DNA of 64,000 nucleotides, taken from Heteronotia binoei (lineage: Eukaryota). The DNA is taken from the NCBI RefSeq assembly GCF_032191835.1, contig NC_083237.1, positions 18,910,001-18,974,000 of the forward strand, written 5' to 3'. The position numbers and the translations under genes are program-made. Shown here one piece after another: positions 12,721 through 60,300 of the stretch. The number at the start of each line of letters is the position of its first letter. Position 1 is the stretch's first letter. The notes beneath the pieces were generated by a model. It did not search any database. It worked only from the letters and a program-made list of their open reading frames with translations, and had not been told where the DNA came from.

Positions 12721-12920
12721 AGATAAAATTAGACTCCAGATAGACAGACAGATAGAGAGACAGGTAGGTAAATGGTAGAAAGACGATAGATAGATGAGAG
12801 AGAGAGACGAACAGTAGATAGATGATAGATGATGAGAGAGACAGAGACAGATTTCTCATGGTTTTGGTGGTTTCAGCCACATGGTGGCGTCTAAACAATA
12901 ATTCTGCTCTCTAATTCCAG

Positions 12921-35621: not shown

Positions 35622-38600
35622 CTACGACATGCAAGAGAGAGAGAGATTAATCTTGGGGGGCAGAGAGAATTAAGCTGCAATCCTATACACATTTCTGGCA
35701 GTAAGCCCTGAATAATATAGGAATTACTTCTGAGTAGCCCTGTTAAGGATAGATCCCTTGATCTACAAAGCATTATTAGTTATACTAATATGTTAACACA
35801 CATAATATTATGCATCTAAAAGTGTGCCTGCATGTGATATTTTTAATATCAGCTAGAGAGAATCATCCAGGGCTAAGGCACAGGTTTTTGCAAACCTGAG
35901 GAAACCCCAAAGTTTCAGAAAAATGCAACTTTTTAATATTGTGGGACTAAAAGCCACCAAAATAGTAACAGTACCATCTGCACATGCAGATAGGTCATTT
36001 AAAAAAAATGCATTGTGTGGGGACACAAACCAGCACTCAATAATTCTGCAAAAGAAAGAGGCAAACGACAGGGAGCAGAAGTGGGGAAAGAACAGGGATG
36101 GAGAAGCCACATTTGCTGCAGTAGGAGGAAGCCAATGAAGGGATGGGTGAGAGTGGCAGGAGAGAAAAGACTGGGCAGGGTAGCTGGACCAGAGGACAGG
36201 AAGGAAGAAAGAAAGGTTAGGTGAAGGGGGTTATGGAAGTACAGGGAGACAAGAAGCAGAGGCAGTTAAAAGGAGGCACTTTCAGACTTCACTGTGTGGA
36301 AAAGCTTATTACATTTTAGCGCAACACCTTGTAACTGACTATGACAGAACACTTCAGCTCCCAAACTAGGGTTGCCAATCCCCAGGTGGGGGCAGGGGAT
36401 CCCCCGGTTTAGAGGCCGTCCCCCCGCTTTGGGGTCGTCAGAAGCGGGAGGGGAGGGAAAGGTCTGCTGGGAACTCTTGTTATTCCCTATGGAGATTTAT
36501 TCCCATAGAAAATCATGGAGAATTGATCCGCGGGTATCTGGGGCTCTGGAGGGGGCTGTCCTTTTGGGTAGAGGCACCAAATTTTCCGTATAGCATCTAG
36601 TGCCTCTTCCCAAAATATCCCCCAAGTTTCAAAAAGATTGGACCAGGGGGTCCAATTCTATGAGCCCCAAAAGAAGGTGCCCCTATCCTTCATTATTTCC
36701 TATGGAAGGAATTGAAAAGGTGTGCCGTCCCTTTAAATGTGATGGCCAGAACTCCCTTTGGAGTTCAATTATGCTTGTCACAGCCTTGATCTTAGCTCCA
36801 CCCCTAATGTCTCCTGACTCCACCCCCAAAGTCTCCTGGCTCCACCCCCAAAGACCCCAGATATTTCTTGAATTGGACTTGGCAACCCTATCCCAAACTG
36901 TGAAGCCACAATCCTTACCCAAAGGGAAACCAAAGACAGCTGGCTGAGGCATCATAGGAGGCTCATGAGCTGCCTCCTGACTGGCTACAGCAATATTACG
37001 CAAGCGTAGACTGTCATAGAGGCCCTGAAGTTTCTGATATTGACGGTTGCGCTCCATGAGTTTCTCAGAAAGTTCCGTGAATTTCTTTTTGTATTCCTCC
37101 AGCACTTTCTTCAAGGAGGAAACCTCACTCTTCATAGATGTCAGCTCCACATCCTTGCTTTGGAGTTGCTGGGTGTAAACTTTTTCCATCTGTTTCAGGT
37201 GGCCCTCAGCCTTGCTGTAGGTGTATTCTTGGTACAACCTTTCTTGATGAACCTGCCACGACAGAAGCAAAAGCAGGGATCATAATGGTGTTCTTAAATT
37301 TTTGAATTCAGTCTTCAATTATTTCTGCTTTTTTCATTTTAAGAACATGTTTCTGAACATCGTAGCTGTAGAGAAGAAACAGTTGCACAACTATTACCTG
37401 TTCTTATTTTCACCATGAAAATATCAATGGTCCAAAATCCTGTTTCATACAGCAAGCAGCCAGTTGCTCTGGGGGATCAACAAACCAGGCATAGAAGCCA
37501 AGGCCTTCCCTTGATGTTTTTTTATTTATTTATTTTTATTTATCTAAGATTTATATCCCGCCCTTCCCACTAGGTGGCTCAGGGCGGCTTACAACATATA
37601 AACTAACATGAAATCTAAAATTAAACATTAAAATTAACATTTCATAATTTACAGTTAAAAATCTAAACAATTGTTATATACATACACATTTGTATGTATA
37701 TACAATGTATGTTGCATCCTCACACTGGTAGGTTTGTTACCTCTGGATCTGGAGGATCCCTTTAACCATGGCTGGTATTGGCAGTAACTTCCACAATTTA
37801 ATGCCACCGTGGCACAGAGTGTTAAAGCTACAGTACTGCAGTCCCTAAACTCCGCTCATGACCTGAGTTTGATCCTCAGTTGAAGCTGGGTTTTCAGGTA
37901 GCTGGCTCGAAGTTGACTCAGCCTTCCATCCTTCCGAGGTTGGTAAAATGAGTACCCAGCTTGCTGGGGGGAAAGCGTAGATGACTGGGGAAGGCAATGG
38001 CAAACCACCCCATAAAAAGTCTGCTGTGAAAACGTTGTGAAAGCAACGTCACTCCAAAGTCGGAAACAACTGGTGCTTGTATAGGGGACCTTTCCTTTCC
38101 CTATTCCCCATCCCTTACTGATTTGTTCATAGTACACATTTGTAGATTTAAAACATTTGTAGATTTAAAAAATTTCTATATCTGCTACATTTGAAGCCAT
38201 AAAGGATGAGCATAGATGAAAACTGATGTTGATAATTGCAGTAAAATTTGCTGTGCAGCCTAGAGGAAAAAAATCTGGTTTCCAGTGGTCCAATTTGAGA
38301 TATCAAGATCTTGGTCTGGGTTTGTGAAAACGGGTTTGTGGAAATGAATAATATGTACATTCGGATTTTGTGGCAAAAATAAATATTTCCCGAGCTTATT
38401 ACCAAAACAGGACTTTGCTTATGGGCTTGTTGGATTTCATAGAACAGAATAAGAGATGACTAAATATAATGGGTTGGATCTGAAGGTGTATTTCCGCACA
38501 TAGGCCTCCTCTACTCACCAAACAGCTAGAGCAAGATGAATAGCTGTGTTAGTCTGTTTGTATCAGTAGAAAAGAGCAAGCGTCCAGTAGCACTTTCAAT

Positions 38601-39074
38601 ATTAACAACATTTGTGGCAGGGGATAAGCTTTCGCAAGTCACTGCTCACTTCTTCAAAGAGCTATTTTATTTTTCACCCTACAGCATTATGTGAGAAAAC
38701 TGCAACCAAATCTAAAGAAGTTAAGAAAGAATCTTGTTGGCACCTCAAAAGCTAACAAAATTAACCAGTAACTTTACCTGGTATGTCCAGAAGGCCAGGG
38801 CCCTGGAGCTGATGTCTAGAATAATCTCTGGACGAAGTCCTGCGAGGACCATCGCTTTATATTCTTCAGAAGGGTTGAGTTCTGTCCGAACAATATCTAA
38901 CTTGCCGGACAGGGCACTGTTGCAAGCAGGGCAGACTGCCGGTGAACGGCTGAACTCCCCACTACCATGCTGGTCACAGAAGATATGGGAGCAGGCTGTG
39001 ACCCACGCATAGCCTGAAAGCTTGACTCTACATTTGCGGTAATTGCAAAGAAGCATATCTTCACAGACGGACAT
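35422..39074 (-). CDS. CCNB1IP1: E3 ubiquitin ligase CCNB1IP1 (HEI10), 276 aa, 3 coding exons
   Basis: Exons 38778-39074, 36919-37252, 35422-35621 (297+334+200 = 831 nt, open). RING domain CNYRKC...CSHIFC...CPAC, coiled coil, C-terminus FKPFF...KIKRM*; canonical splice sites. Confidence 0.97.
36367..36890. mobile_element. hAT non-autonomous element (TAGGGTTGCCA TIR)
   Basis: TIRs and 8-bp TSD TCCCAAAC. Confidence 0.85.
36919..37252 (-). CDS. CCNB1IP1: CCNB1IP1 second coding exon (coiled coil)
   Basis: VHQERLYQEY...AVFGFPL; donor G|GTAAGG. Confidence 0.96.
37803..38100 (+). mobile_element. Sauria SINE
   Basis: Full head-to-tail consensus match. Confidence 0.8.
38778..39074 (-). CDS. CCNB1IP1: CCNB1IP1 first coding exon (RING domain); exon acceptor at 39143
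   Basis: MSVCEDMLLCNYRKC...AFWTYQ; donor CAG|GTAAAG. Confidence 0.96.
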
Positions 39075-39589
39075 GCTGGTGGGCCAGTGAGAAAGATGTA
39101 CAAGCGCTCCCTGTGGGACAGTAATGTACGATTAACCATGCACCTAAGGAATGAAAGATATATTAATGCTAAGGTTTGCAGATTTTTTTTTTTTTTTAGG
39201 ATTTTGATAAGGGAGGGAATATACACACACAAAAGATCCAGGATATCTGTATTTTAGTGTGTTCTTGCTGTGGGTTGGTTTATGAAAGTTCACCACCTGT
39301 TTCAACTTCAGCCAGCACCCCGCCACTGTCAGAAGCCCCTCATCCGTGATCTTAGGTGTTATATTACAATTATTATTTATCCTGCAGGGTTGGGGGTTTT
39401 GGGGGGGGGGGGTGGTTCTGGACGCAATCTGTTCCTGTGTAACAACTGCAAAAAAAATATTTATAGCAAGATGTGGGCTTGTGAGGAAGGAAGGCTGGAC
39501 TGTCCAAAGACGCTATTACACCTATGGTTTCCCCCTTCACATACTGCTTTTAAATCTATATATATTCCAGGGAAAACATGTGTCAAGAA

Positions 39590-39930
39590 AAGGCGGAAAT
39601 TGGAAATGACGCATGATACAGGCGGGCAGTTGCTCAAACGCTCACGCTTCCCGCCAAATTCAACCCTCCCCTTGGTTTAGCTAACGGGCGCACCTCGCGC
39701 CAGTCCCCCTCCGCTTTTCAAAGCTTCCCGCGCTTTCCTCTCCTAACGCTTCACCTGAGGCGCTCGGAAAATTAACGCAGGAGAGAGGAGGGGGCTCGGG
39801 TGGGCCGTACCATTGGTTGAAAGAAAGTGGGGTTCAATCAAGGAAATAAAATCGCCGCGTTAACTCCCCTCCCCCTCGCGTTGAGGACTTGTTTCCCTCG
39901 CCCTGCGTCTTCTTCACCCCACCCATGAAA
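39590..39930 (-). promoter_or_regulatory. CpG-rich proximal promoter candidate for CCNB1IP1
   Basis: CpG-rich patch 0.5-0.8 kb above the coding exon; CCAAT at 39812-39816; E2F-type TTCCCGCC at 39648 and TTCCCGCG at 39725; candidate donor CAG|GTGAAG at 39755. Confidence 0.6.
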
Positions 39931-40389
39931 TATTGCCGTCCCTTAGCTTCCAAAAAAGGCAGTTGCAAAGTCCACGCAAAACTGGTATAATCCAAAGCGA
40001 CATTTAAGTCCAGTTGAACAAAGTTAGAGTCCAGTGGCACCATTTACGACCAAGAAAGTTTTAATTCTGGGTATAAGATTTCGTCTGCATTGCACACCTC
40101 CTGCACACGAAATACCCAGATTTAAACTCTAGATCTTAAATGGTGCCACTGGACTCAAACTTCGTTCTATTGCTTCAAACAGGGCTACCCACCTGAATGT
40201 ATTTAAATCCAGTACTTGTTTTCCTTGCTGTAAGAAAACGTGTCTATGCACTAAAGCAGCATTTGCAACAAACCGGTGCTCAATTCTATTTAATTTTGAA
40301 AATCAAAATTATGGACCCTGCCCCAAGTAAAATCTAATTTTACAAGTTGAGAACATAATTCTTTTTGTAGTTGGTTATTAACAAAAAGA

Positions 40390-40878
40390 ACCCGGAGGCG
40401 CAGAGTGGTAAAGCTGCAGAACTGCAGTCCAAACTTCCTGCTCACGACCTGAGCTCGATCCCAGTGGAAGCTGGTTCAGGTAGCCGGCTCAGGTTGACTC
40501 AGCCTTCCATCCTTCCGAGGTCGGTAAAATGAGTATCCAGCTTTCTGGGGGGGAAGTGTAGATGACTGGGGAAGGCAATGTCAAGGAAGGAAAGGTCCCC
40601 TGTGCAAGTACCAGTCGTTTCCGACTCTGGGGTGACGTTGCTTTCAGGTTTTCACTGCAGACTTTTTACAGGGTGGTTTGCCATTGCCTTCCCCAGTCAT
40701 CTACGCTTTCCCTCCAGCAAGCTGGGTACTCGTTTTACCAACCTCCGAAGGATGGAAGGCTGATTCAACCTGGAGCCGGCTACCTGAAAACCCAGCTTCC
40801 TCTGGGGATCGAACTCAGGTTGTGAGAAGAGTTTAGGACTGCAGTACTGCAGCTTTAACACTCTGCACCACAGGGCTC
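40390..40878. mobile_element. Two Sauria SINEs tail-to-tail (40390-40578 +, 40585-40878 -)
   Basis: Two consensus matches in opposite orientation. Confidence 0.75.
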
Positions 40879-43595
40879 TTGCAATGGCAAAGCATGTAAA
40901 CAAGAAATCCCTAATAACAATCCCTAGCAATATAGTATCAGTCATAAAAATAGCATGCTTTTTATTTATTATTTTCAATTTATAGCCCGCCCTTTCCCAA
41001 ATGGGCTTTGGGCAGGTAACAACAGTGTATTAAAAGTGTATTAAGTTCTTAAACCTGTATCCCTAAAGGATAGAAATGTTAATGGAGTATATATATTTAA
41101 GTCATTTTCTTCTCCACATCTAATCAGACTTATTCAGGATGTATCAAATATGGGGGCTGCAACTTCTATAATTCTTGGGAAAGCAAAACTGCAGAACACA
41201 CCCTCAGGCAAACCTTATTTAGATGCATGTAGAATAAGTTTGGTTAACATTTACACCATATGAGTGTTTTCCATAAACCTCAGCACTGCCTTGATACAGA
41301 AGCTTCAAAGAGCATCTCTTCATTTTTTCAGTCTGTTGAACAAAAGATAAAGGGGGAAATGGATAGCAGAATATGCAACAAAGTTTAATTCAGGAGTGGC
41401 CAAACTACTTTATTAGAAGCAAAAGGCTTGAGGTGGGGGAAAGCAGAATACAGAGAAGGTTATCAAACATTGTTCTGCTAAGGGCTTTTCCCTGTTCGAA
41501 GCCTTAAGGATTCCAGATTCTCAGGTGTTTAAACTGCAATACTTAATGTTGCATATCCACAAAAATTAAAGAGTCCCCTTGAAACTTCATGGATGAAACC
41601 ATCCTGACCCAAAACAGTAAGAATGAACTGTTTTGTCCTCTAGTTCTACCAACTCTTTCAGGTCTTCAGTTAACACCTACCCTTCACCCCAGGAACCATA
41701 GTATCAAAAAAAGGAAACTGAAGACTGTAGGGGCTGAATATTGTACACTCACAAAACCTTTTTGCCCAAATTACACATGTTCCTTAAGGCTTAGAGCAAG
41801 CAAAGTTTAAGTCCATTGGCCACCTTTAAGACAAACAAAGTTTAATTCAGGTGTGACCAAACTTACTTAACATAAGAGTTACATAGAATAAATGTCAGAT
41901 GTCTGAAAGCCACAACAAGACATGAATGTCAAATATTTGAGCAGGGCCAGATCTAGGGGGGAGCAGAGGGGGTGCTTGCCCCGGGCGCTGACAGAGGGGG
42001 GGTGCCAAATTGGGTATGGAATCCATTGAATTCTATGGGGACCATAAGATAGAATGGCCCATAAGAGGGCATCATTTTTTAACCCCCCTCCCCTCAAAAA
42101 ACATGTAGATCCAATCCTGTGTTTGAGAGAAGGAAAGAAGGAAAATAGATAGGGGAGGAACATAAGAACATAAAAGAAGCCATGTTGAATCAGGCCAATG
42201 GCCCATTCAATCCAGCACTCTGTGTCACACAGTGGCCAAAAAAAGAGGCACCATCAGGACGTCCATCAGTGGGACCAGGACACCAGAAGTCCTCCCACTG
42301 TGCCCCCCCCAAGCACCAAGAATACAGAGCATCACTGCCCCAGACAGAGAATTCCAATAATATGCTGTGGCTAATAGCCACTGATGGACCTCTGCTCCAT
42401 ATGTTTATCCAATCCCCTCTTGAAGCTGTCTATGCTTGCAGCCGCCACCACCTCCTCTGGCAATGAATTCCATGTGTTAATCACAAAGAGAGAAGTGGAA
42501 AGAAAGCAACTTTAACTTTAAGTGCAAGTCACTTGGCTTGGCGAAATAATAAATAACTTGGCTTGGCAAAGTAATTTAAAAAGATATGCCTTCTCCAAGC
42601 TGGCCAACAGTGCGATAGGGGCTTCTAGAGTGACACAATGTGTGTGAAAGAGCCACGTGTGGCTCCCAAGCAACAGTTTGGCCACCCCTGGCTTAATTCT
42701 ATGTATAAGCTTTTTTGTGCATGTACACGAAAGGTTATACTCAGAATTAAACTTTATTCATCTTCAAGATGCCACTGGACTCAAATTTTGTTCTATTGCT
42801 TTATCCCCATGAATTTATCTTCTTGACAAGACAGGTGTCAAGATCTCTTGAGGTGAGGCAGCTGCCCTCTCCCAGGTGGTGGGACCCAAAGTTGCCAAGC
42901 CTGCCATAAATTGGCCCTTGCCCCACTGATAGATTTATCAGTGTTCCTCCACCCACATTCCAGACTGCGCTTGCTGCCAGGTTGCTCTGGGGAAGGGTGT
43001 ACATGTGGAGTATAACGGCAGCATTCCTGGCAGGCAGTCATGTTGAGATTCAGAACATGGACAGGAAATTTCTAAGAAAGTAGATGCCGCAGGTGGCAGA
43101 TTTCAGAATCAGATGTCTTGACAGCCTCTCTAGATTAGATTAGAGATTTGGGCTGCTTCCAAAAATCCCAAGGGGGATATTGAATTTGTGTTTCTCATTA
43201 AGCTAGTCTATTTTGCTCATATAGCATGCATTGCTTTGACTTGTCTCAGATACCTTAAGTGAGCTGGGGAGCACGTCTACAACTGTGTCAGGATATGATG
43301 TACTGCGGTGTTGTTTTGCTTAAATTGTATTTTCTCCTATTTTGAATGTTTAAGGTGTGTTGGGTCCCTGTTAAGGATAAAATAATTGAACAACTCCTAT
43401 AACTTCCCATTTTAAATATATCACAAACCATTTTGTCAGTACCCAATACATATCTATGTAGGGTAAATGCAGAAGACCCCCATGGGGCAGAGTGGTAAAG
43501 CTGCAGTACTGCAGTCCGAACTCTCTGCTCACGATCTGAGTTCGATCCCGGCAGAAGCTGGGTTCAGGTAGCCGGCTCCAAGTAGACTCAGCCTT

Positions 43596-44230
43596 TAGGC
43601 TTCCCAACCCTCCCGCCCTGGCGGGGGACTCCAGGATTTCCACCCTCTTCCCCCGCTCCCCCAAAAAATGGAAGCAGGGGGAGAGGGGGGAATGGCGCCA
43701 AGCCACCGGATCCTGGAGCCGGCGAGGCCACCGCGCCGCTGCCGCCCCCTCCCCACCCACCGCAGTTTCTCCTCCGAGATGAGCCCAGGCTGAGCCCATC
43801 TCGGTGGAGCAGCCAAGAGGCGGCAGCAGTGCAGGGGAGGGCGAGGCAGGCCAGGAGCATGGCGAGCCGCGAATCCGGGCCCTTCTAGGACCCGGACTTG
43901 CGGCTGGCCACGCTCCCGGGCCGCCTTCACACCCCCCCCTCTGCTTCTATCCCAGAGGTGGAGCGGGCGAGGCTGCCGCGCCGCTGCCGCCTCTACTCTG
44001 CTCGCCGTGGCTGCTCCTCCAAGATGGGCTCAGGCTGAGCCCATCTCAGAGGAGCAGCCACGGCGAGCGGAGCAGAGGCAGCAGCTGCGGGGCGGCTTGC
44101 CACGCTCCCCGGCGCTGTTTCCCCCCTCCCTCCTAGCTCCACCCCAGTGTCTCCTGGCTCCATCCCCAAAGTCTCCTGGCTCCACCCCCAAAGTCCCCAG
44201 ATATTTCTGGGGTTGGATTTGGCAACCCTA
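43596..44230. mobile_element. GC-rich hAT non-autonomous element inserted in a Sauria SINE (43475-43595 / 44231-44420)
   Basis: TAGGCTTCCCAA...TTGGCAACCCTA termini; 8-bp TSD TCAGCCTT; the SINE sequence resumes exactly after it. Confidence 0.85.
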
Positions 44231-45159
44231 TCAGCCTTCCATCCGTCTGAGGTTGGTAAAATGAGTATCCAGCTTGCTGGGGGGGGGGGAGTGTAGATGA
44301 CTGGGGAAGGCAATGGCAAACCACCCCGTAAAAAAGTCTGCCATGAAAACGTTGTGATGTGACGTCACCCCAGAGTCGAAAACGACTGATGCTTGCACAG
44401 GGGACTATCTTTATCTTTAGGGTTAATGCAAACAGAGAAAGGAGCAGAATCTCTGCCACTGACCCATCCCCACCTATATACGAGTTTTATGCGTGTGTAG
44501 ACTCTAACCTTTAGATCAGGAAACCTGAAAAAACACTGTTCCCTACAGCCAGGACAGAACTTAGGTGTGTATATTTCCACACAATAATGCTCTGAGCTAA
44601 TATTAGACTGAATCCGCACAGGCTGGGAGCAAGGCCACTTGGTGTGATCCTGCTCCCCCATACACACAGCATTGCCTGTATAGATGTCACAGTCTCTGTG
44701 TGTGCTTGTCATGTGTGTGCACGAGTAGCAGAGCTTTACATCCTAGCTTCAGCTGTCTGATCTGTACAATGTCCAGGCCTCAGATTCAGCAGGAGCTCAC
44801 AAGAGCGCAGTTCCTGAACCTTTCTGAAGGTTCCCCCTCTTCCTCTCCATCTACCTTGTCCATTGAATAGCAGGCGCAGCCGCATAACAATTCCTGGATT
44901 AGGAGAGGGGGCAGCCATCCAGCCATCAGGGGCTTTGCCACGCCCCCAGCAGCCCTCATTAACCCCTAGAGAAGCTTGCGTCACCCTTTCTCCATTTCTT
45001 ATGTGATTTTGGGCAGCGGGTGACTTGCTGGCCTTTTGACTGGGGGTGGGTGGCCCAGGAGAGTCCCGGGTGAGCTCTAGCCAGCCCAAGCAGCCCTCAC
45101 TCGCCCGGGGCTCTCCTTTCTTGTATCAAGTTGCTTTTGGCTGGGGGGGCATATGCTAA

Positions 45160-45624
45160 TAAGGTTGCCAATCCCCAGGTTTGGAGACCCTCCCCCCGCT
45201 TCAGGGTCGTCAGAAAGCGGGGGGGGGGGGAGAGAAATGTCTGCTGGGAACTCTATTATTCCCTATGGAGATTTATTCCCGTAGAAAGTCATGGAGAATT
45301 GATCCGTGGGTATCTGGGGCTCGGGGGGGGCTGTTTTAGGGGGTAGATGCACCAAATTTTCAGTATAGCATCTAGTGCCTCTCCCCAAAATACCCCCCAA
45401 GTTTCAAACAGATTGGACCAGGGGGTCCAATTCTATGAGCCCCAAAAGAAGGTGCCCCTATCTTTCATTATTTCCTATGGAAGGAAGGCTCTGAAAAGGT
45501 GTGCCGTCCCTTTAAATGTGACGGCCAGAACTCCCTTTGGAGTTCAATTATGCTTGTCACAGCCTTGATCTTGGCTCCACCCCAAAGTCCCCAGATATTT
45601 CTTGAATTGGACTTGGCAACCCTA
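45160..45624. mobile_element. hAT non-autonomous element (TAGGGTTGCCA family) nested in an older MITE (about 44754-45685)
   Basis: 8-bp TSD TATGCTAA; highly similar to 36367-36890. Confidence 0.85.
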
Positions 45625-48045
45625 TATGCTAATGAGTTATGCTAATGAGCTCCATCACCTATTTTCTACAAAACGACCCCTGACAATGTCTGTCTGAAAA
45701 CTCAATTAGATATTTGGCAAAATCACACTGTACAAGCCTTCCCTCCTCCCCTTAAAGCTTGGCAATATCTGAAATCAGATAGATGAATAGAATTGGTATG
45801 CATAAGAACTAGACGGCAAAAAATGCCTATATTTTAAAGATCATAGAATCATACAGGGTCATCTAGTCCAACCCCCTGTGCAAGATGTTGGAAAGCTTTT
45901 CTGGATTATTGTTTCTGTATGATTAGCATGAATATTGATTGGCTGGTTTCAGCCATTTTCCTTAGCTGAAACAGTGCTAGGGGGCATTTTGGAGCCCCAC
46001 TCCTCCCAGGTTTAGGAAAATTGGGGGGGGGGGGGAGAGCCCCTTTGCCCCACCCCTCCACAACATGATAAGTCCCAAGCCAAACCAGGCCCCTATAGCA
46101 TTGTTAAAAGGAATTGCCTATAGCATTGTTAAAAGGGTTTTGGTTATATCATCGGTTTTCTTCCTGATTATGCATGTTTTCTTATAACTGTGGATTGATT
46201 TCAGAGTTAATCCACAGTTATTCTGATTGCATAACGGTTTTTGAAATCTTTGACAGTTAATTAAAACAGTTCCTGAAACATTAGATTGTACTAGAGATTA
46301 AAAATTGTTTAGCCTTCCAATCTTGCTTAAAAGGAAAATTAGCACATATTAAATGTATTTTTAGATGCACCTGTTTGATTATCATCAGTAGTTAAGAACC
46401 AATTATTTACCTGGATGATGATCACATGTTTAAAATTTAGCATAAGATATGACTACAACTTTTCTATAAAAATGTGTTGCTGTGATAAGCAAATCAGATA
46501 TCTCTGATTCTTCTATCAGAAGAGCATAGGTGAGATTTCTTTGTGTGTGTGTGTGAGAGAGATAGAGACAGACAGACAGACACTTGGGTTTATAGAAAAA
46601 TTTGTATAGCAGTTTAAGACAATAACCTTGCATCTGATTTGCCTTATCTTATTTATTCAAATATGGTTGATAAATGTTAGATAATTTTGGCACTTATTTT
46701 TTGCAGTAGCTATAAGGGTTCATATTCTTGTATTTTCTAACATCTTGTCAATAAAAGATAGAATCTCTTTGAAGGTTTTCTGCCTGATTTGCTAATAATT
46801 GTTCAAAGAAGAGAACTCACAATTAATTTGTGAAAGCCTTGTAGCTTGTCTGTTTTCTTGTAGTTCCGAAGTTCTGAATCTATTGTGTTTCACAGATTCA
46901 GCCCCAACAAAAAGAAGTACTTGCTGTCAACTTCTAAATCATTTTTAGACCCTGCTTTGTACCAGTTATTTCCTTGCAGGGAAATCAGGCCACAGGTAAA
47001 TCAAGACACTACTTCTGACCCATTCCTTGCTGACTTCCTTTCAGAAAAAAAAAAATTAAGGCAAGGAGAGTGGGTTGGACAATTGAAAAAAGTGACTGAT
47101 GGATTTTTCCCTCCTTTGCCGCTATGAACATTCCAAATGCCAGCTATTTCACTAGAATTTTGCAGTTAAAAGAACTGGATTCCCTATCCTGTTTGGGGGT
47201 TGGGGGGGGGGGGTGTTCAACTTTGCAAATAGTGAGTTTGACGTGTAAAATTTGAATTTTGTCCAAAATTAGTTGTTTAGACAGTACGATAACTTTCAGA
47301 TTTGAAACAGAATGTGACCAGTAAGAATACAGAAAATGTCATACATTTTAAAATGCCTGTATTCTGATCCAGTCCACACTTGAGCCTTTTCAAACCTTCA
47401 TATCCAATGGCATGAATACGTGTAGGAGTGGGGGGCAGGCTGTTGCCAGCGCTGAACTATGTATATTTAGCGGAAGACTGGAACAGTCTACATGCATGCA
47501 CACATACTTGCGTAGGTTTCACTGCACATGATCAGGAACCCTGGGTTTTTAATCACATATAATTTTGTACCCATGAGCTCTGACCCAGGTGAGGGAGGTG
47601 AGGCCTGATGCCACAAGTCCACTTCCTCTCTCCACAGCTTTTCAGAAGGTTTCTGCCTCCTTTGCAGGAGAAAGGGTCCTGAAGGAGACAATTAGCTGGG
47701 TTTGGAAGAAATGTTTGATCCAAATAGCCCTTCCCCCACCCCAGAGCTCTTTAAGCGGAATTGGGATCTGAAGATATACACCTAATTCTCACACTCCTTG
47801 ATAGTATTTATTCCTTGGGTCTGGATTCCCCCTCATGCGCGCCCCCCCTGTTAAAAAAACTGATATATTCCCTGGCTTATGGAGGACACTAAGAATGCCC
47901 AGTCTTCACTAGACTGATGAGGCAGAAGTTTTTTAAAAATGTATCCTTCTAGTCATTTGGAACCTTTCGGTATTTAGTTTGTGAATGGCTCCATTTCACT
48001 GTCCTGCTGTACCAATTCACCATATCAATTTATGATACATTTATC

Positions 48046-48247
48046 CAGGGCTTTTTTTGAGCAGGAACACACAGGAACGCAGTTCCAGCTGGCTTGGCAT
48101 CAGGGGGTGTGGCCTAATATGCAAATGAATCCTTGCAGGGCTTTTTTCTACCAAAAAAAGTGCTATGTGGAACAATGGTGACATCAGGGGATGTGGCCTA
48201 ATATGCAAATGAGTTCCTGCTGGGCTTTTTCTACCAAAAAAGCCCTG
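48046..48247. mobile_element. hAT MITE (CAGGGCTTTTTT TIR)
   Basis: TIRs at both ends; two ATGCAAAT octamers inside. Confidence 0.8.
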
Positions 48248-48377
48248 CGCTTACCACCGCTGTATTTTCTCAGCTTGTTGCAATCACCTATTTTCCAGTA
48301 AACCAGGAAAAGCATTTGATTCCACTTGCATATCATTAATATTATATTGTTGTCGTCGCTTCCTAGGATCAAACACG

Positions 48378-49418
48378 ATGCCTCAAATACTCCACAAGAG
48401 CAAAGCGCCGGGAGTTGATTTCTGCGGGGTGGATGACTGTTATTACATTGTCCGCTCCGACCTGGGCTGCTACATGAGATCAAGCAACTTCAATGAGGGC
48501 AAGGACCTGGTAGTGTTTAACCTGCACAATTCTTGCCAGGGTGGAGATCACTACTTAGCCCACGAGGACAGCTTGTTCTACATCATCAAAGGAAACAACT
48601 ATCGCCGTGTCGCTAACATGAATAAGGATGAAGATGCTGTCGTGTACAGCCTTCACCCCAACTGTCAAGGAGGGGACCACTACCTCTCTGCCTTTGGAGC
48701 CTTCTACATTATTTTCCAAGGCAGATGTGTTTACCGCAGGGTCTCTAATATGAATACAGATGAAGATGCAGTTGAATACACCCTTCACCCAAATTGTCAG
48801 AACGGCCTTTATTACTGGGGTGTGAAGGATTACTACTACTTTGTGAAACCGCACGATGAATGGGGGATCCAGTACTTTAGGTGCACTAACTTCCATGAAA
48901 ACCTAGATGCTGTTACCTATTCCTTCCATGGGAGTGTGGTCCCCTTTCTCCCTGGAGGGCTGGCCATCGATAAAGGTTCAGCTTTTGGTAGATGGGAGGC
49001 CATCAAGACCATCTCCAACAACTCTGACAGTCCTATCCAGTGGAACAAGAAGATCACAAAGAAGGTGGGATACAACAAGATGCAGATGAACAGTGTGGAG
49101 CACAACTGGAAAATCAGCATGAGTGCCTCCTATCAGGCGGGGGCCCTCACTGAAGCCATTGCCAAGTACCAGTTCTCCCTCTCAGCCGAATATGGAGGAA
49201 GCGCTGTCCAAACCCAGCAGGAAGACTGGAGCGAAGCCACAGAGATGGAAGAATCTGTTCATGTGAACCTGCAGCCCAAAAGCCAGATGTACATATGGCA
49301 ATACCAACTGGGCTTTGGCAAGCAGCCTGTCTTGTTCTGCCGTGACCTGATGTTTACTAATGATTCCACTCCGCCCACAACAGTTCCATTGCCGCCTTCC
49401 AGCACATCAGCACGTTAA
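48378..49418 (+). CDS. Uncharacterised 346-aa protein: four ~44-aa repeats (probable beta-propeller) plus putative aerolysin/lysenin-type beta-pore-forming domain
   Basis: 1041-nt stop-free ORF; splice acceptor ttcctag| 11 nt before the ATG; tandem AATAAA about 205 nt after the stop; internal repeats GDHY...FYII...YRRV.NMN.DEDAV.Y.LHPNCQ; alternating Ser/hydrophobic hairpin at aa 244-274. High confidence that it is a gene; the product call is an inference. Confidence 0.85.
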   Translation: MPQILHKSKAPGVDFCGVDDCYYIVRSDLGCYMRSSNFNEGKDLVVFNLHNSCQGGDHYLAHEDSLFYIIKGNNYRRVANMNKDEDAVVYSLHPNCQGGDHYLSAFGAFYIIFQGRCVYRRVSNMNTDEDAVEYTLHPNCQNGLYYWGVKDYYYFVKPHDEWGIQYFRCTNFHENLDAVTYSFHGSVVPFLPGGLAIDKGSAFGRWEAIKTISNNSDSPIQWNKKITKKVGYNKMQMNSVEHNWKISMSASYQAGALTEAIAKYQFSLSAEYGGSAVQTQQEDWSEATEMEESVHVNLQPKSQMYIWQYQLGFGKQPVLFCRDLMFTNDSTPPTTVPLPPSSTSAR

Positions 49419-49623
49419 AGTCAAGTCCAAATCAGTAGTTTGATCAGGAACTAGGGCTGCCAGATCATCCTAAATCCCTGTATCTGTAAGGTGGGGGGTA
49501 CTGTTATCATAGGATGGGGCTTGGTGATGCACACTGAACATCTGCATTAATAGGTATGTACACCTCGTGGTATATATGTGTAGACACAATCATGTGACTC
49601 TGAAGACATGGGCTGTTTCTCAG

Positions 49624-49636
49624 AATAAAAAATAAA
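49624..49636 (+). terminator. Tandem polyadenylation signals of the 48378-49418 gene
   Basis: AATAAA at 49624-49629 and 49631-49636. Confidence 0.7.
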
Positions 49637-50765
49637 ATGGAAATTACATGCTAAATGTAAAATGCAGCTGTGTTTTAAATGCCACTTCTTACCTCCATCA
49701 TCAATGTGTACGGGCAGCAGGCATCAAAAGTATTAGTGTACCTACATCCATCTCTGAAGAGATGCTGCATGGCCGTAAGGTACAGGGCAGGATTCCAGAC
49801 TGGGGAAGACAGGAGCAAAAGATATCAGAAAGTACCATAATTACTAAAATTGGAGATTCCTAAATTATTCCACCGGCATAGATATTATCCCCTAAACCCA
49901 GTTAGGAAGATGTCTATGGTTATGGTGTAGCGAGGGGAAAACGTTCTGCCTACATGAAGAACACTTGCATTGTTAGCATACAGATAAATTACGCTTGGCA
50001 TAGATTAGTTAGAACCTTCTATCATACTTAATTTTAGTGAGAGGTGATGGGAGTCAAAAGTGCCTGGGGATACCAGTCTTCCTGAAGCTTCCAGTAGTAC
50101 AGTGCTTATTTTTCAATAAGAGGTTTTGCAGTTTAAACCCGTCGGTGCATTATGCCTCTTCAGTCCTTATCCCAGATTTTAGGTCAGGTATGAAAAGGGA
50201 CTCAACAGCGATTGTTCATTGGTGAGTAAAAAGCATTCAGCACTCGCCCAGACATTCACTCCAGCGGTAACAGCAAACTATTAAAATCAGACCCCAGGCT
50301 GAGTGAAACTGGGCGTTTAATTTTCTGGTCTTGTCACAGGGCCTTATTTACTCCCAAGCAGTGTTCCCTTCCCTCTAACCTGAGTTAGTGTGAGCTAGCT
50401 CACAGTTTTTTACTCTCTGGCTCACCCATTTTTGTCTTACCTCAGGCAGGGTGGCCCCAGAGCAAACTAACGTATGCGGTAGCTCACAACTTTATAGTTC
50501 ACAAAATAGAATTTTTGCTCACAGCTTAGAGGGAACATTGCAGTCCCAAGACAAATTTTTCACTACAGAACAAGAAGGCAAGCCCAAAAGTGGAACTCGC
50601 ACCACAGCTTTCTTAGGCTTTATGTTTTCATTTTAGACATTAGAGAGGAAGGGGGGGGGGTTAAGGAGAGAGAAAAGATTTGAGGAGAAAATTACATGGG
50701 ACAGGGCAAAGGAGAATGAATTTGATCAAGAAGGAGTTAATAGGCTCCATGACAACTATTTTGAG

Positions 50766-51065
50766 ATCCGTGGCGCCGTGTTAAAGCTGCAGTACTGCAG
50801 TCCAAAGCTCTGCTCATGACCTGAGTTCGATCCCCAGCGTAAGCTGGGTTTTCAGGTAGCCAGCTCGAGGTTGACTCAGTCTTCCATCCTTCTGAGGTCA
50901 GTCAAATGAGTACCCAGCCTGCTGGGGGGAAAGTGTAAATGACTGGGGAAGGCAATGGCAAACCACCCTGTAAAAAGTCTGCCGTGAAAACATTGTGAAA
51001 GCAACATCACCCCAGAGTTGGAAAAGACTGGTGCTTGCACAGGGGACCTTTCCTTTTTTCCTTTC
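50766..51065 (+). mobile_element. Sauria SINE
   Basis: Consensus match. Confidence 0.8.
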
Positions 51066-51974
51066 CCCTCTTTCTCCTGCTCTGTGACAAAAACTGCTAA
51101 CTCCACAATAGAAAGGGCTAGAGCAAGGGGTGGCCAAACTGTGGCTCCGGAGCCACATGTGGCTCTTTCACAAACATTGTGTGAAAGCCCCCACTGCCCT
51201 GCAAGACAGCAGCCTGGAGAATGCATTTAAACTTAACGTTGCTTTCTTTCCACCTCTCCCTCTCCCAAAAATCTATTTTCCTTCTCTAGTGGTTCTCAAA
51301 CTAATGTCTTGCGGTTCTCAAACATCTGATATATATTCTATGTGGCTCTTAAATTAAGCATTTTTGGCCACCCCTGGGCTAGAGTGTTTCATTTCTATAC
51401 TCCATTTCTTTACTGTTCAGCAGCAGCTTGTTACAAAGCAAGCAAACTAACACAAGTGCCATTAAAACCAAGCCGGGGGAAAGTCTGCCTGAATACATAG
51501 CCTCTTAAAACTGGGTGACAGAAGGCCTCACTTCAACTGATAGCCTCTTAAATAAGGGATCTCCACAGAAAGTCTTTTCTGTGGCAGTCGCAGCTCCCAC
51601 CTCCTTTAAGGAAAGGAAAGGAAAGCCAACTTTGTTGAGACAATCTAAACGCCTGTCTGATCTAAAGGTCCTGCATATGGGAAGAGAGGCTTCTTCAAGT
51701 AAGAGGGAACCAGGCCAAAACCAAGGACTTGAATTGGATGTGTGCAGGCTGGTAGCCAATGCATAAACCAGTTTACATTAGACAGCTTAACACTCTAGAC
51801 CAGGAGTCCTCAACCCCTGGTCCGTGGCCTGTTAGAAACTGGGCCGTAAGTTGTAGAATTATTTCATTATATATTACCACGTAGTAGTAATAAGACAACA
51901 CTGGATTTATGTCCTGCCCTCCACTTCGAATTTCAGCGTCTCGGAGAGGCTCACAATCTCCTTTACCTTCCTCC

Positions 51975-52406
51975 TGTCAAGTCGGCTGAATTCAATAACG
52001 AGTCTCTTGATAAAGTAACAAGTTTATTGTAATCAGAACTGTAGACCATGGCAGAGATTGAAGGACTGAAACACATATGCACTAATCCAGTATTTAAAGT
52101 ATGAATCTAAAGGATTCCTACGGGGGGCAATCTATGCAACACATCTTCACACTAGGATGCTACTTCTTTCGTTCCCCGACCGAAGTCTTGACACCCCATA
52201 CTCCCCACAGAGAACAAGGCTGGGAAGGCGCCACTATCTTGTTCACAGGTTAGCATTTCAAAGCAGGTTACACAACAAAGGCCTTTCTAGAGAGGGGGCA
52301 GGAAAGTGAGCTAGCAGCCCCCGGTGTACACTGTAAAGTACCCAGACTCCTTCACTTCAGAACCAAACTTAATACAGATATTGGGTAACCCATAGCAGAC
52401 TTGACA
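51975..52406 (-). mobile_element. Probable solo LTR (432 bp) inserted in a Squam3-like SINE
   Basis: TGTCAAGTC...GACTTGACA termini; perfect 5-bp TSD CCTCC; TATA-like TTTAAATA at 52098-52091 and AATAAA at 52028-52023 on the minus strand. Confidence 0.75.
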
Positions 52407-52411
52407 CCTCC

Positions 52412-52819
52412 CCCACAACAGACACCCTATGAGGCGGATGGGGCTGAGAGAGCTCTCACAGAAGCTGCCCTTTCAAGGACAGCTCTGCAAGAACTACGGC
52501 TGACCCAAGGCCATTCCAGAAGCTGCAAGTAGAGGAGCAGGGAATCAAACCCACAACAGACACCCTGTGAGGTAGGTGGGGCTGAGATCTCCCCAGAAGC
52601 TGACCTTTCAAGGACAACTCTGCGAGAGCTATGGCTGACCCAAGGCCATTCCAGCAGCTGCAAGTAGAGGAGCGGGGAATCAAACCCACAACAGACACCC
52701 TGTGAGGTAGGTGGGGCTGAGATCTCCCCAGAAGCTGACCTTTCAAGGACAACTCTGCGAGAGCTATGGCTGACCCAAGGCCATTCCAGCAGCTGCAAGT
52801 AGAGGAGTGGAGAATCAAA
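52412..52819. repeat. Tandem triplication (135-138 bp unit) of the SINE body
   Basis: Units start at 52412, 52550, 52685; units 2 and 3 are nearly identical. Confidence 0.85.
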
Positions 52820-55800
52820 CCCGGTTCTCCTAGATAAAGAGTCCACACACTTAACTACCACACCAAAACTAATAGAAATAAATACACAATTGTATAATCC
52901 CAAAACCATTGCCCCCACACCCACCCCGGGGTCTGTGGAAAAATTGTCTTCCATAAAACTGGTCCCTGGTGCCAAAAAGGTTGGGGATCGCTGCTCTAGA
53001 TTGTAAAACAGCTGCACCAGCCAAATCAATGCACAGCAGCTGCATATAGAGCATTTGAATTAAAAATACTTGGCTGCCCCATGGAAAAAGAATGCATTTA
53101 CACTCCTGTGGTAACACCAAGGAAAAATTTCAGTGTAGCAGGACAAAGGGGAATGTTTTTTGTCCAAACCCACCTCCCCACACCGCTGAATAAATACTGC
53201 CCTCCCTGTGGCACCAAGTGAATCTTAATGCAACCCCCCCCACCCCTCCAGTGTTCAAGTTCACAATTCAGTATCTCTGCTTGGAGCTGGAGATTAAGAG
53301 AGATCCACCCCCAAGAGCTACTAGATCCAGAGAAGTCAACCTGCGATGTCTCAACTTTGAAAGACATCACCTTTCTCTTCCAAGAAACTGATACCCATGT
53401 CTCTGCCTCGCATATACTTATTAGTCCCCACACCAAGTAGAGTGCAACCTAGCTGCCAACAGTCACAACAGCTGTCTTCATTTTCTCTTCAGCACCCTTC
53501 ACAAAAAGTAGCCACAATCTGAAGGAAAATGTTGTCCTTTTATGGCTTAATGCGTGGAAACAGGCAGTTGTTTCTTGTGGCATGGAGGTGGACATCATGT
53601 TAAGTCTGTATTAAGAGTCAGAATACTTTTTCTCTAGGTTGTCAATGATACAAATATGTTTGTCATTAAAAAAAACCTTGCGCTGACAAAAACCTCCGTG
53701 AAAGTGGTCCCCTTCTGCAAATGTCGACTAAGCATGGCCGTAAGCTATAGTCACTGCTGGCTCAAGTACCTTTGCTTAATACCTTACTTTTTATGGTCTT
53801 CCTTAAGCCTGGTCTTTTAAGAATGAGTGACATTGACTATCTTTCAGAGTCTGTGTGCAGGAATACACGTGGCAGATGACCACAATGGTGACAAAATGTT
53901 TTGCAACACCCAAACATCTGGAGCTCCTCCAAGTCAAGGCTAACCAAACAACCTGAGACATCATGACAGTCAGAAGCAATGAGTCATTTCTAGCTCAACA
54001 TTTTGGAATTTTAAGCATCGTCATTTAGGAATATGCTAGACTGTTTCTACACTCAAGCACAATGAAAGACAGCAGTTCCAAATACTGTCTCTGGCCACAA
54101 CCATGCTTTCAGCAACAAGACTGGAAGATATGTAGCATGCATGCAGGTACTTGGGCAAACTGGCATTTCCTACTTCTGCACAAGCATATTTTAAACTGGG
54201 ATCAAACTGATGTTTTAAAACCTGCTTTGTGGGAGGATGGGGATGAAAAGGAAATAAAATGCTGTTTGACCAAGTAGCCACATTGAAGGTTTTATGGATC
54301 CAGGGGGGAGGAACAAGCATGCAAATGCCACTAATAATTACATCTTATTCTAGTACCACCTACAGTTAAATCAGATTTATCCTCACTTCTGAATACAACC
54401 AGTTTGCAGAAACAGTGAGGCAGAAAAAATCAGTCTGAAATACAATCTCACTTTGTGAGATCACGATTAAAATCTATTTGAGTAAGCATTCGTATGGAAG
54501 AATTTCCACAAAGTCTGGGTTCCCCATGTTTAGGAGAACTCTGGTTACAACAGAAGGAAAACAAAATGCAAATCACAATCCAGAACCTAAACACCAATTG
54601 ATTTCAGGGATGAAAGCAACTTCAAAGGTATTCTATCTTCACAATACATAGGTAAAAGGCAGCGCGCTTCCAGTTAAAATCAGTCTTAGTTATGTGCCTT
54701 AATGACACTGTATTTCCATCTCAGCAAGGCCAGGCTAGATTGGTATTAATTTGGGGGCAGAATCACAGGAAATGCAAACTAGGAAACTCAGGGTTGTTTT
54801 ATATTTTGTGTATGTGTGTGTGTGAGTAATCGCACCTAAAAGTTATGGCAACCTCTGGTGACTGACCTAAACCAGGGGCCTGGAGAATATTCATAGAGAT
54901 GGTTGGATAAAGCCTGCCCATCCTCCCGACTGCTGGTATTCCAAGGAGGTCTCCCATCCAAGTGCTTACCAGGTGACCCTGCTTAGCTTCCAAGATCTGC
55001 CAAGATGGGGCCTGCTTGGGCTATCCAGGTCAGGGCAAAAAACTCAGATTTTAAATGCATGCTCAACTTCATTCCAATAAATACTCTGCTAAATAAAACA
55101 AGTATTAAGCTGCAATTCTATTCAGGCAATGATTTTATTTATTTTAGCTGGCCATTCAAAAATTAAGGGGGATTTTCAGAATCCACTGTCTTCATTTTCA
55201 AATGTTATGACAGAATTCCTGTGTCTTCTATAAAGGCTTTCTTCCCACTAGTAATAGGATGCCATTTGCATCTTGAAGTCCAGCTTGAACACCCTATTGG
55301 GGGGAAAAATTTGGCAAAGTTAGAGATGAGCACAGAACAATTCTTTCATGAAAGAATATATGCATTTCCAAACCCATGCCTGTGGACAGGAAAAGAGCCC
55401 TCCCCTCCCATCAGCATGGACCAATCAGATCCAAACAGGCTGCATGGAGTGAAAGAGGGGGAAAAACCTGAGGGGACTTTAATGGTCAACAACCAATCAA
55501 CAGAACTGTTGGGATTTGGAGGGAGAATAGGAGGTTTTCTTACTAGGCAGGATGTTGACAAGGGACTGCAGTATATTTTTATTTATTGGCAAGGTTCAGA
55601 TGCTGTTCCCTCAAGGCAAACTTTAAGGAATCTTGCAGGTGTTTGTCAGGATAGAATCAATTTACTTAAAACATTTGTTAACTGCATTTCTACCTAAATG
55701 CACTCAAGACAGCTTACAATATAAACAGTTATAAAACATAAAATATGGTATTTTTCACGTTATCTCACACACCTAAATTAACAGATAACCCAGTGTAGTA

Positions 55801-55980: not shown

Positions 55981-56131
55981 GCATGTGTGACCCCGCAAAA
56001 TTCAGTGCAGAACCATGGGATGGCCCAAACCCATCCCTAGGCTCTCCTGAGTGAAGAAAGGCCATCATTAATATACGATGACACAAAAACCCACTGCCCA
56101 AGTCTTGTGACAGTGAGAGGAACGGTCATCG
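55981..56131 (-). ncRNA. SNORA79: H/ACA snoRNA/scaRNA SNORA79 (ACA65)
   Basis: Minus strand CGATGACCGTTCCTCTCACTG...GGCAGTGGG...ATATTA (H box)...TCTTCACTCAGG...ATTTTGCGGGGTCACACATGC (ACA box 3 nt from the end). Matches human SNORA79 as I recall it; pocket sequences are complementary to U6 around U31 and U86. Confidence 0.9.
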
Positions 56132-57756: not shown

Positions 57757-57834
57757 AATCTGCTCAGTGCATTCACATAATCAGGGTTAATCAGGTGAAA
57801 CACGGACAGAATGTGCAGCTCATCACAGCAGACT
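57757..57834 (-). ncRNA. SNORD126: C/D box snoRNA SNORD126
   Basis: AGTCTGCT-GTGATGA (C box)...GTCCGTGTTTCACCTGAT...CTGA (D box)-GCAGATT with a terminal stem; core matches human SNORD126 as recalled; same order relative to SNORA79 and CCNB1IP1 as in human. Confidence 0.9.
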
Positions 57835-59389
57835 CTTCAAAATATTCTCCACTTCCGGCTAATCCCCGAAGGAATGGGAAATCAAAATCAAACCAACTAA
57901 GGTACAGGAACTCATCGGTTCAAGAGAAGAGATCATACCTTTCTCCTACTGACCACCGAGGGCACCGAAGTCCCACTACAAGTTCTGAAATCCTTGGCCT
58001 TTTGTGGATTCGCTCAGCCCGTCATGTGACGGTGTCAGTCACTTCAGAATTCTATGGAATCAAGGTCTCTCGTTCATTTCCCTTCAAACCTGTGAATGAA
58101 AGCATCTATTATTACCACCATTCTAAAAGCAGGCAGACTGAGCCAACAAATCAAAACAGTCGTACTGATGCTTCTTCCATTGCAACATCTGTGTTTCATC
58201 TAACTAACAAGAATGCCAAATGTTAAGCCACAATCTATGCAATATTCCGGACTTGCTAACCACAGACAGATTTTAAGTGGGTAGCCATGTCGGTCTGAAG
58301 AAACAGAACAAAGTTTGAGGCCTGTGGCACGTTTAAGACCAACCAAGTTTTCTTCTGGGTTTAAGTTTTTATGTATGCACATTCTTCTTCAAGCAATGTG
58401 CATGCACCTGAAAGTTTGCATCTTGAATGATACTTTGTTGGGTCTTAAATGGCACCACTGGACTCAAAAAAATTTCTCACCAGACAATACAGCTAGTTTC
58501 AATGCAAGTTCAAAAACATGATGTGTTTTGAAGCAAATTAATTGATCATCTCAATCGGGCTTCTTAGATTACTACTACATTACTATGTTTATATTTTTTA
58601 TTCACATTAGGTCTTCCGCACCCCAGATCAGAGTTCTCTGGGGCAGGCAACACACAGAAGTTACAACTGCTATTACCTTTATAGAAACGAGCCTGTAGAA
58701 CTTTGTCTACATTGAGCCTTACATCAATGCATAGGGGACATTCAACGTTTACACCAGACCAGTGCTTTCCACCAACTACAGCAGGGCTTTGATACAGAGG
58801 TCTCAAACAGAACCTCTCCATTTTTTTTTCCCAACCTGGAAAATAAGAGACGTAAACATAACAGGTTACCAGAACACACAAGGCACCTTCACACATTAGA
58901 ATCAAATCTTGAAGGAAACGCAGTGCAAAGGCTACTGAATATTATGCTACATGCACAGTTAAAGGTGTTTTTTTTTCACATATGGAGCCCAAACAGCCCT
59001 TGAGATTCTCAAGATATTCACTTAAAGTTCAAGTGTTTCTAAGGTTGCACTTGCACAGAAATTACGTGGACAAAAACACCTTATTTAAATCTCAGGGATT
59101 AAAATGGCCTCGATTGAAGCAGCAGTACATCACCATCTTTCCAGCACTTTGATTAGCAAACTGCTCTTTTCTATCTCTTCCATCTTCCTCCCCAAGAGGA
59201 AAGCTAACCTAGCATCACTATAGATCCAGATGGGTAGCAGTGTTGGTGTGAAGCAGTAGAACAAAGCAAGAGTCAAGTTGCTCCTTTAAGACTAACGAAG
59301 TTTTATTCAGAATGTAAGCTTTCGTGTGCTTCTAGCACACGAAAGCTTACATTCTGAATAAAACTTCGTTAGTCTTAAAGGTGCAATTT

Positions 59390-59683: not shown

Positions 59684-59699
59684 TGCAACTTGACTCTTG

Positions 59700-60300
59700 C
59701 TTTATTCGAGCATCACTATGTTAAAGCTCGCGACAATCCGTCCGATTTCCGCCTAGTGCCGCTTCAAAATAAAACAAAGTGGCCACAAAGCCTCTCCCGG
59801 CTCCAGGTATGTTCAGTGGTCCAAAGAAAACCCGGGGCGCACGCGGGGCTTGCATAAAGGGGCGTCGCACGTGCAGAGATTCGCCTTCAGCGCTGCAACG
59901 AGCAATGAATGGCGCATCAGGGCAGATGCGGCGAGCAAAACACGTGCCAAGGCCTGACCTGGAAAAGCGACCCCACGTGCCATCACACACCTTGGGTCCA
60001 GGGGCTGCCACACCCAAATATTCCAGCCGAACAACCCCTACTGCGATTACAGATCACCCCAAAAGAAAAAGAGGGGCGGATGACAAAACTAACCTGGGAT
60101 TAGCAGCAGATCCGTTTGCAGGCCCGAGAGAAGCTATGCACACCAAGGCCGCTTAGGAGACAAAGCGGAAAAGGATGGGCGGAGCAGGAAATACTGCCAC
60201 GCTGTCTTGCTATTGGCAGAGAAGACACGCCAATCACCTTTTTTTTTTGTTTGTCACGTGAGCTTGCGGTGGGGGACGGGTAGAAGGATGCATCCGAATG
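59700..60300 (-). promoter_or_regulatory. CpG-island promoter with TCT/5'TOP start, GC box, CCAAT boxes and four CACGTG E-boxes
   Basis: Minus strand TCCTTTTCC at 60175-60167; GGGCGG at 60177; CCAAT at 60212 and 60230; CACGTG at 59868, 59941, 59974, 60255; donor CAG|GTTAGT at 60094. Confidence 0.75.

Follow-up and report, generated by a model that had tools for sequence, protein, structure and literature searches.

An intact, conserved gene for a 346-residue protein lies on the plus strand between the CCNB1IP1 coding exons and two small nucleolar RNAs (snoRNAs) in a 64,000-nucleotide stretch of the Heteronotia binoei genome (assembly GCF_032191835.1, contig NC_083237.1, positions 18,910,001 to 18,974,000; hereafter the window, with position 1 as its first nucleotide). 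The gene, which we call type A, belongs to an uncharacterized vertebrate family. We favor, with a probability of about 0.72, the reading that it is functional and vertically inherited, that it lies between two transcription units, that its product joins a propeller to a pore-type module, and that the family was lost in mammals. The gene and its candidate control elements are as follows.

48378..49418, plus strand: type-A member of the uncharacterized vertebrate family; complete coding sequence, 346 amino acids plus stop codon.
48365..48366, plus strand: probable 3' splice site (pyrimidine tract and AG) read from the sequence, 11 nucleotides 5' of the ATG.
47462..47588, plus strand: candidate promoter and first exon, with a TATA-like TATATTTA at 47462-47469 and a putative donor CAG/GTGAGG after 47588.
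49624..49636, plus strand: two overlapping AATAAA sequences about 206 nucleotides past the stop codon, putative polyadenylation signals.

The coding sequence is a single exon, and tblastn found no second copy or fragment of it in the 64-kb window. The acceptor 11 nucleotides 5' of the ATG implies an upstream noncoding exon. The three alternative N-terminal extensions of turtle isoforms converge on ..NT/MP, the place equivalent to the gecko acceptor, which indicates that a noncoding 5' exon followed by one coding exon is common to geckos and turtles. As read from the sequence, the open reading frame (ORF) is a conserved gene that probably has a transcription unit of its own, consisting of a short noncoding first exon, for which the promoter and exon listed above are candidates, and one coding exon. 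Just before the coding exon, the putative 5' intron contains a 63-nucleotide direct repeat (48095-48241; 83% identity, copies 84 nucleotides apart) with ATATGCAAAT-like octamer motifs.

A word-based protein search returned 353 homologues of the 346-residue protein. The best 120 of these cover approximately 99% of the query, are 340 to 350 residues long, and are without exception annotated "uncharacterized." Identity is 82 to 83% for proteins of Gekko japonicus, Heteronotia, and Paroedura, 73 to 78% for those of amphisbaenians, skinks, lacertids, and turtles, 70% for the coelacanth protein, and 55 to 69% for proteins of sturgeon, gar, salamanders, many frogs, and many teleosts. An alignment of 84 sequences contains 23 invariant and about 80 near-invariant columns. 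The maximum-likelihood tree follows the species tree, with geckos (support of 99) placed within squamates (support of 97), turtles as the sister group, and amphibians and fishes elsewhere. Judged from these comparisons, the type-A gene is a member of an old bony-vertebrate family and appears to have been inherited vertically. No mammalian or avian protein was present among the best 120 of the 353 homologues or among all 57 matches to a second lineage of the family, type B, described below. The simplest reading is that mammals lost the family. Such a loss had been one of two alternatives in a preliminary description of this DNA, and it fits the overall distribution of the family (coelacanth, amphibians, turtles, squamates, and ray-finned fishes, with no mammal among the matches listed).

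Linkage of the type-A gene to CCNB1IP1 in other species was assessed by treating identical eight- or nine-digit scaffold lengths for the two genes as evidence of the same scaffold. By this measure, the two genes share a scaffold in five gecko genera (Gekko japonicus, Heteronotia, Eublepharis, Sphaerodactylus, and Paroedura), in the lacertids Podarcis muralis, P. raffonei, and P. lilfordi, in the skink Tiliqua, and in the sea turtles Chelonia, Eretmochelys, and Caretta, where they are 8 to about 60 records apart. The Gekko japonicus scaffold is 121,679 bp long, which puts the two genes within 122 kb of each other. Accession numbers follow genome order in such records. In P. muralis, CCNB1IP1 (XP_077773074) is followed by family members XP_077773075 and XP_077773076 and then by at least six further copies, and in P. 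lilfordi the records of CCNB1IP1 (CAI5791142) and of a family member (CAI5791140) are two numbers apart. This accession order points to lacertid family members that directly adjoin CCNB1IP1.

The family and CCNB1IP1 occupy separate chromosomes in Latimeria and in the following 16 amphibians.

Unlinked, first eight: Ambystoma, Pleurodeles, both Xenopus species, Ascaphus, Pelodytes, Rhinophrynus, and Mixophyes.
Unlinked, other eight: Engystomops, Hyla, Dendropsophus, Eleutherodactylus, Pyxicephalus, Phyllobates, Leptodactylus, and Dendrobates.

Because the genes are unlinked in amphibians and the coelacanth, the position beside CCNB1IP1 is derived with respect to them; the neighborhood is as old as sauropsids but not ancestral to vertebrates. 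The best explanation of these records is that type A has been next to CCNB1IP1 since at least the gecko-lacertid ancestor and in the same chromosomal neighborhood since the squamate-turtle ancestor, following a likely move or duplication into that neighborhood in stem sauropsids or amniotes. The simplest history would then be a family unlinked to CCNB1IP1 that came into its neighborhood in stem sauropsids or amniotes, was kept beside it in squamates, and was lost in mammals. In a separate observation, an old gene model of Chelonia mydas (EMP26819.1, P0181) joins the Rel domains of NFATC4 to a RIPK3-like kinase that contains a RHIM motif and to the C-terminal domain of the family, so that a turtle copy is probably directly beside RIPK3.

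The units on either side of the type-A gene in the gecko were defined by protein, Rfam, and CpG analyses.

38778..39143, minus strand: CCNB1IP1 exon with the start codon (ATG 39074) and RING finger (zf-RING_5, E 7e-8); acceptor 39144/39143, donor after 38778.
36920..37252, minus strand: coiled-coil coding exon of CCNB1IP1 (minimum extent), placed by protein search.
39301..40100, minus strand: unique CpG island, observed/expected ratio up to 0.94, with a CCAAT box and a donor CAG/GTGAAG near 39757, immediately upstream of the start-codon exon.
55981..56131, minus strand: SNORA79-family H/ACA snoRNA, full length (model positions 1-143; Rfam 96.7 bits versus a gathering threshold of 55).
57757..57834, minus strand: SNORD126 C/D snoRNA, full length (model positions 1-77; Rfam 66.9 bits versus a gathering threshold of 55).
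60093..60300, minus strand: putative 5' terminal oligopyrimidine (5'TOP)-like promoter and first exon of the snoRNA host transcript, with a CCAAT-type element (attgg), an E-box, a pyrimidine start ccttttccgctttgtctcc, and a donor cccag/gttagt near 60093.

Two exons identify CCNB1IP1: an N-terminal RING exon, which has an AG acceptor with a pyrimidine tract, and then a coiled-coil exon (37252-36920) that is 100% identical over 111 amino acids to Gekko japonicus CCNB1IP1 and 95 to 96% identical to the turtle, Anolis, and alligator proteins. The search with this exon used the stop-free frame 36686-37279 as the query, scored over residues 10 to 120, and returned 261 matches named CCNB1IP1. Two unique CpG islands rise above a background observed/expected ratio of 0.28. 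One, at 59.3 to 60.5 kb (59301-60500), contains the 5'TOP-like promoter; the other, at 39.3 to 40.1 kb, had no match in the repeat comparison and is a probable proximal CCNB1IP1 promoter with a short exon of the 5' untranslated region (5'UTR). Of the host exons that the preliminary description had placed at 53.5 to 60.2 kb, only the 5'TOP-like promoter and the first-exon donor near 60.1 to 60.2 kb can be read from the sequence.

The same description had put the ORF on the plus strand between a minus-strand snoRNA side and the CCNB1IP1 coding exons, and the ORF, the Rfam matches, and the placement of the RING and coiled-coil exons all agree with that layout. The type-A gene has the opposite orientation to the snoRNAs and the CCNB1IP1 coding exons that flank it, as a nested gene would. 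It is possible, and we lean somewhat away from this view, that the gene is antisense-nested in an intron of one long transcript that would originate at about 60.2 kb, at the 5'TOP promoter, have SNORD126 and SNORA79 in its introns, and be spliced to the CCNB1IP1 coding exon at 39143. Both snoRNAs are upstream of CCNB1IP1 on the same strand, the acceptor on the start-codon exon calls for at least one exon further upstream, and human SNORD126 is intronic in CCNB1IP1, as the preliminary description had stated and published work confirms (PMC8148486; PMC1636440). However, the unique CpG island provides a CCAAT box and a good donor approximately 0.6 kb upstream of that acceptor, which suffices for an isoform with a short 5'UTR.

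Given the separate island at 39.3 to 40.1 kb, one or more CCNB1IP1 isoforms would be expected to start below the type-A gene. With this probable second promoter, the type-A gene may simply separate two transcription units, and for such a short-5'UTR isoform the gene would be upstream and divergent, not nested. In the two-unit arrangement that we prefer, the type-A gene would stand head to head with the proximal CCNB1IP1 promoter, about 7.7 kb away, and tail to tail with the 5'TOP host unit that carries SNORD126 and SNORA79. A long spanning transcript is compatible with this arrangement as an additional isoform; host transcription would then cross the type-A gene and could interfere with it, and the antisense site within or beside a snoRNA host could couple type-A expression to a housekeeping TOP promoter. 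As in the human CCNB1IP1/SNORD126 host, SNORD126 and a SNORA79-family snoRNA are upstream of the coding exons on the same strand (PMC8148486, PMC1636440). In what appears to be a difference from human, the gecko has an opposite-strand protein gene in between and a proximal CpG island before the coding exons. The arrangement itself is ordinary, that of a conserved gene between two promoters and possibly within a long 5'UTR intron.

The protein was modeled with AlphaFold2 from the 84-sequence alignment, giving a predicted local distance difference test score (pLDDT) of 87 and a predicted template modeling score of 0.83; this model was used because the single-sequence model (pLDDT of 33) was unusable. 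Residues 2 to 195 are confidently predicted to be a hemopexin-like four-bladed propeller, and structural comparison aligned the entire domain with several hemopexin domains of known structure. The blades have a distinctive conserved motif, Cys-x-Gly-Gly-Asp-His-Tyr, and the Pfam hemopexin repeat (PF00045) gave no match anywhere in the 346-residue protein. No signal peptide was predicted for the gecko protein or for the other vertebrate members, with the exception of one divergent Podarcis paralogue. The type-A protein therefore differs from hemopexin-fold proteins such as matrix metalloproteinase C-terminal domains, serum hemopexin, vitronectin, and the legume PA2 albumins in lacking the Pfam repeat in favor of its own blade motif, in not being secreted, and in having its propeller fused to a pore-like module.

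That module, residues 200 to 346, consists in the model of two long strands, a 50-residue insertion of lower confidence, and three long strands. The insertion (residues 234 to 285) is rendered partly as helix. Averaged over the family, its two arms (residues 244 to 253 and 262 to 272) are rich in Ser and Ala and show strict polar/hydrophobic alternation. The period-2 hydrophobic moment averaged over the 84 sequences peaks at residues 239 to 255 and 259 to 273, as in an amphipathic pre-stem hairpin, and the arms are bracketed by the invariant residues W244 and W284. The 2+3 strand topology, with an alternating hairpin held between invariant tryptophans, leads us to read the insertion as a pre-stem hairpin of the aerolysin type. 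The nearest named clusters in a protein language-model comparison were Aerolysin/ETX_MTX2 (0.77 to 0.79), and zebrafish Dln1 was among the Foldseek matches (E 6e-4), though its probability was low. On the model, residues 200 to 346 are probably an aerolysin-type beta-pore-forming module. Matches to CEA, Porin O, and YEATS in the Pfam and PDB searches were set aside as noise.

Alternatively, the protein may be no pore former but a soluble hemopexin-fold binding protein, either lectin-like or binding metal or heme, in which the beta-rich C-terminal domain serves another role, such as oligomerization or cargo binding. We consider this unlikely. It would account for the propeller being the sole strong fold match, for the partly helical, lower-confidence insertion, and for the missing sequence-level tie to aerolysin, ETX/MTX2, or any toxin family. 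In contrast, strand-insertion-strand topology combined with an alternating, Ser/Thr-rich hairpin conserved from bacteria to vertebrates is a trait of beta-pore formers, and the language-model neighbors all fall in the aerolysin clan. The closest fold match that reaches into the C-terminal domain is CEL-III, the hemolytic lectin of a sea cucumber and one of the closest known systems. The helices of CEL-III refold into a barrel, which also speaks against the soluble alternative. Finally, profile methods had identified a Xenopus tandem of a "tachylectin-2-like propeller + aerolysin-like domain" (gi 73853870, LOC613112; Szczesny et al. 2011, PMC3110756). It probably belongs to the same family.

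A profile search of 1.84 billion representative sequences retrieved only 228 proteins. Among the relatives is type B, a lineage confined to sauropsids, whose members have about 337 residues and share 35 to 37% identity with type A. It occurs in snakes, iguanians, anguimorphs, lacertids, skinks, geckos, tuatara, turtles, and alligator (P0142, P0482-P0510) and forms a long-stemmed clade (support of 100) whose internal branching matches the species tree. Type B appears to be a fast-evolving lineage and type A, that of the gecko gene, a slow one. The snake type-B entries are UniRef records of Hypsiglena, Crotalus horridus, and Micrurus, which we take to derive from venom-gland transcriptomes. In Naja naja, the type-B locus tag (E2320_003394) is four away from that of CCNB1IP1 (E2320_003390). 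Snake protein P0142 was considered as a type-A orthologue and rejected, as it falls in the type-B lineage and provides no evidence for the type-A position.

A search with a three-sequence alignment also found two loci in Microscillaceae (Bacteroidota; L001:4378-5541 and L002:4945-6087) that encode homologues of the whole two-domain protein (25% identity, BLASTP E 3e-30). These proteins have signal peptides, the alternating hairpin pattern is present in the Microscillaceae homologue as well, and the neighboring genes are ordinary bacterial ones (an AraC-family regulator and a PD-(D/E)XK nuclease). Many environmental or assembly-derived sequences of the family lack signal peptides.

The preliminary description had offered, as its other alternative, insertion of the gene in reptiles by retroposition, DNA transposition, or horizontal gain. 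Such a recent arrival would explain the single coding exon and the presumed absence from the human interval and could draw on the repeat-rich flanks and the distant, signal peptide-bearing Microscillaceae homologues, but it is very improbable given orthologues in coelacanth, sturgeon, gar, amphibians, and teleosts, a tree in species order, a 5' intron common to turtles, and a position common to geckos and lacertids. A gene tree that includes the bacterial homologues, as had been proposed earlier, keeps the species-tree order and puts the bacteria on a long, separate branch, with no support for recent horizontal gain in reptiles. We reject recent retroposition or horizontal gain in reptiles because the tree is vertical, the 5' intron is shared with turtles, and the position is shared. 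Of the earlier observation and interpretation, the layout, the gene itself, and, at the level of the family, the mammalian loss have stood, while retroposition, transposition, and horizontal gain have not.

The description of the tract as filled with miniature inverted-repeat transposable elements and short interspersed elements (SINEs) holds as far as its repeat richness goes. SINE-like copies are present at 40.4 to 40.9, 43.5, 44.2 to 44.4, and 50.8 to 51.1 kb of the 39- to 53.5-kb interval, along with hairpin elements. At 52412-52822, three tandem copies of a 135-bp unit (93% matches) give rise to long spurious minus-strand ORFs. tRNA-like Rfam matches occur at 25953-26024 (minus strand, 62.5 bits), 28914-28984 (plus strand, 41.6 bits), and 60740-60812 (minus strand, 38.1 bits). 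ARAGORN called the second as tRNA-Ala(GGC) and the third as tRNA-Thr(GGT), and the weak matches, in repeat-like sequence, are probably SINE heads. The first adjoins the second of two runs of N in the window (9294-9426 and 26092-26482). The open frame of the CCNB1IP1 coiled-coil exon extends at 36686-36919 (minus strand) into a repeat-derived peptide, RVAKSNSRNIWGLWGWSQETLGV, which recurs in ORFs 43996-44364 and 62753-63049 and so indicates an interspersed element in the intron directly after that exon. At the other end of the window, intact single-exon olfactory receptor ORFs are present at 4423-5340 and 12915-13856 (both plus strand; 7tm_4, E 2e-33 and 3e-37), showing that the window passes from an olfactory receptor cluster into CCNB1IP1.

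Several results weigh against the reading of type A as a linked, pore-forming gene whose family mammals lost. PF01117 and PF03318 gave no match at E<=1, either to the protein encoded in the window or to any of 12 diverse family members. No Pfam, NCBIfam-type, or PDB sequence match ties the C-terminal module to aerolysin, the PDB profile search having returned empty or irrelevant results. The absence from mammals and birds is that seen in the best 120 of 353 homologues and the full list of 57 type-B matches, which is not an exhaustive survey. Linkage is read from matching scaffold lengths and accession order rather than from coordinates, and the copy listed for Mauremys does not share a scaffold with CCNB1IP1.

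By analogy with natterin-like proteins, Dln1, and beta-gamma-CAT, the propeller would recognize a glycan, a lipid, or another target ligand. Upon binding, the protein would oligomerize, and its hairpins would assemble a membrane-spanning beta-barrel. The same analogy suggests innate defense as the most likely role. Tandem expansions (eight or more copies in Podarcis and many in frogs), lineage-specific losses, and the fast evolution of type B fit an immune or defense effector. In its predicted layout, with a ligand-binding domain at the N terminus and, at the C terminus, a beta-pore module that has an amphipathic hairpin, the protein resembles the vertebrate aerolysin-like proteins Dln1/Aep1, natterin-like proteins, the lamprey protein LPFP, and Bombina BmALP1 (beta-gamma-CAT). 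Like these proteins, the family has no signal peptide, is multicopy with lineage-specific expansions, and appears to be missing from placental mammals. They differ from type A, whose N-terminal domain is a hemopexin-fold four-bladed propeller and not a jacalin, DM9, or beta-gamma-crystallin domain. Type A also did not match Pfam Aerolysin or ETX_MTX2, and its C-terminal module is short, at about 150 amino acids.

We put just short of an even chance on the broader proposal that these proteins constitute an unstudied, bony-vertebrate-wide class of cytosolic pore formers, in which a hemopexin-fold propeller is coupled to a minimal aerolysin-type module, with secreted relatives in Bacteroidota, a stem-sauropsid move beside CCNB1IP1, and a split into types A and B. 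The main interest of the locus is the protein family, which is conserved from fishes to reptiles, annotated as uncharacterized everywhere, and without a matching Pfam family. If pore formation holds true, the family would add a new type of binding domain to the vertebrate aerolysin-like effectors and would offer a tractable case of the relocation, duplication, and loss of a gene family across amniotes.

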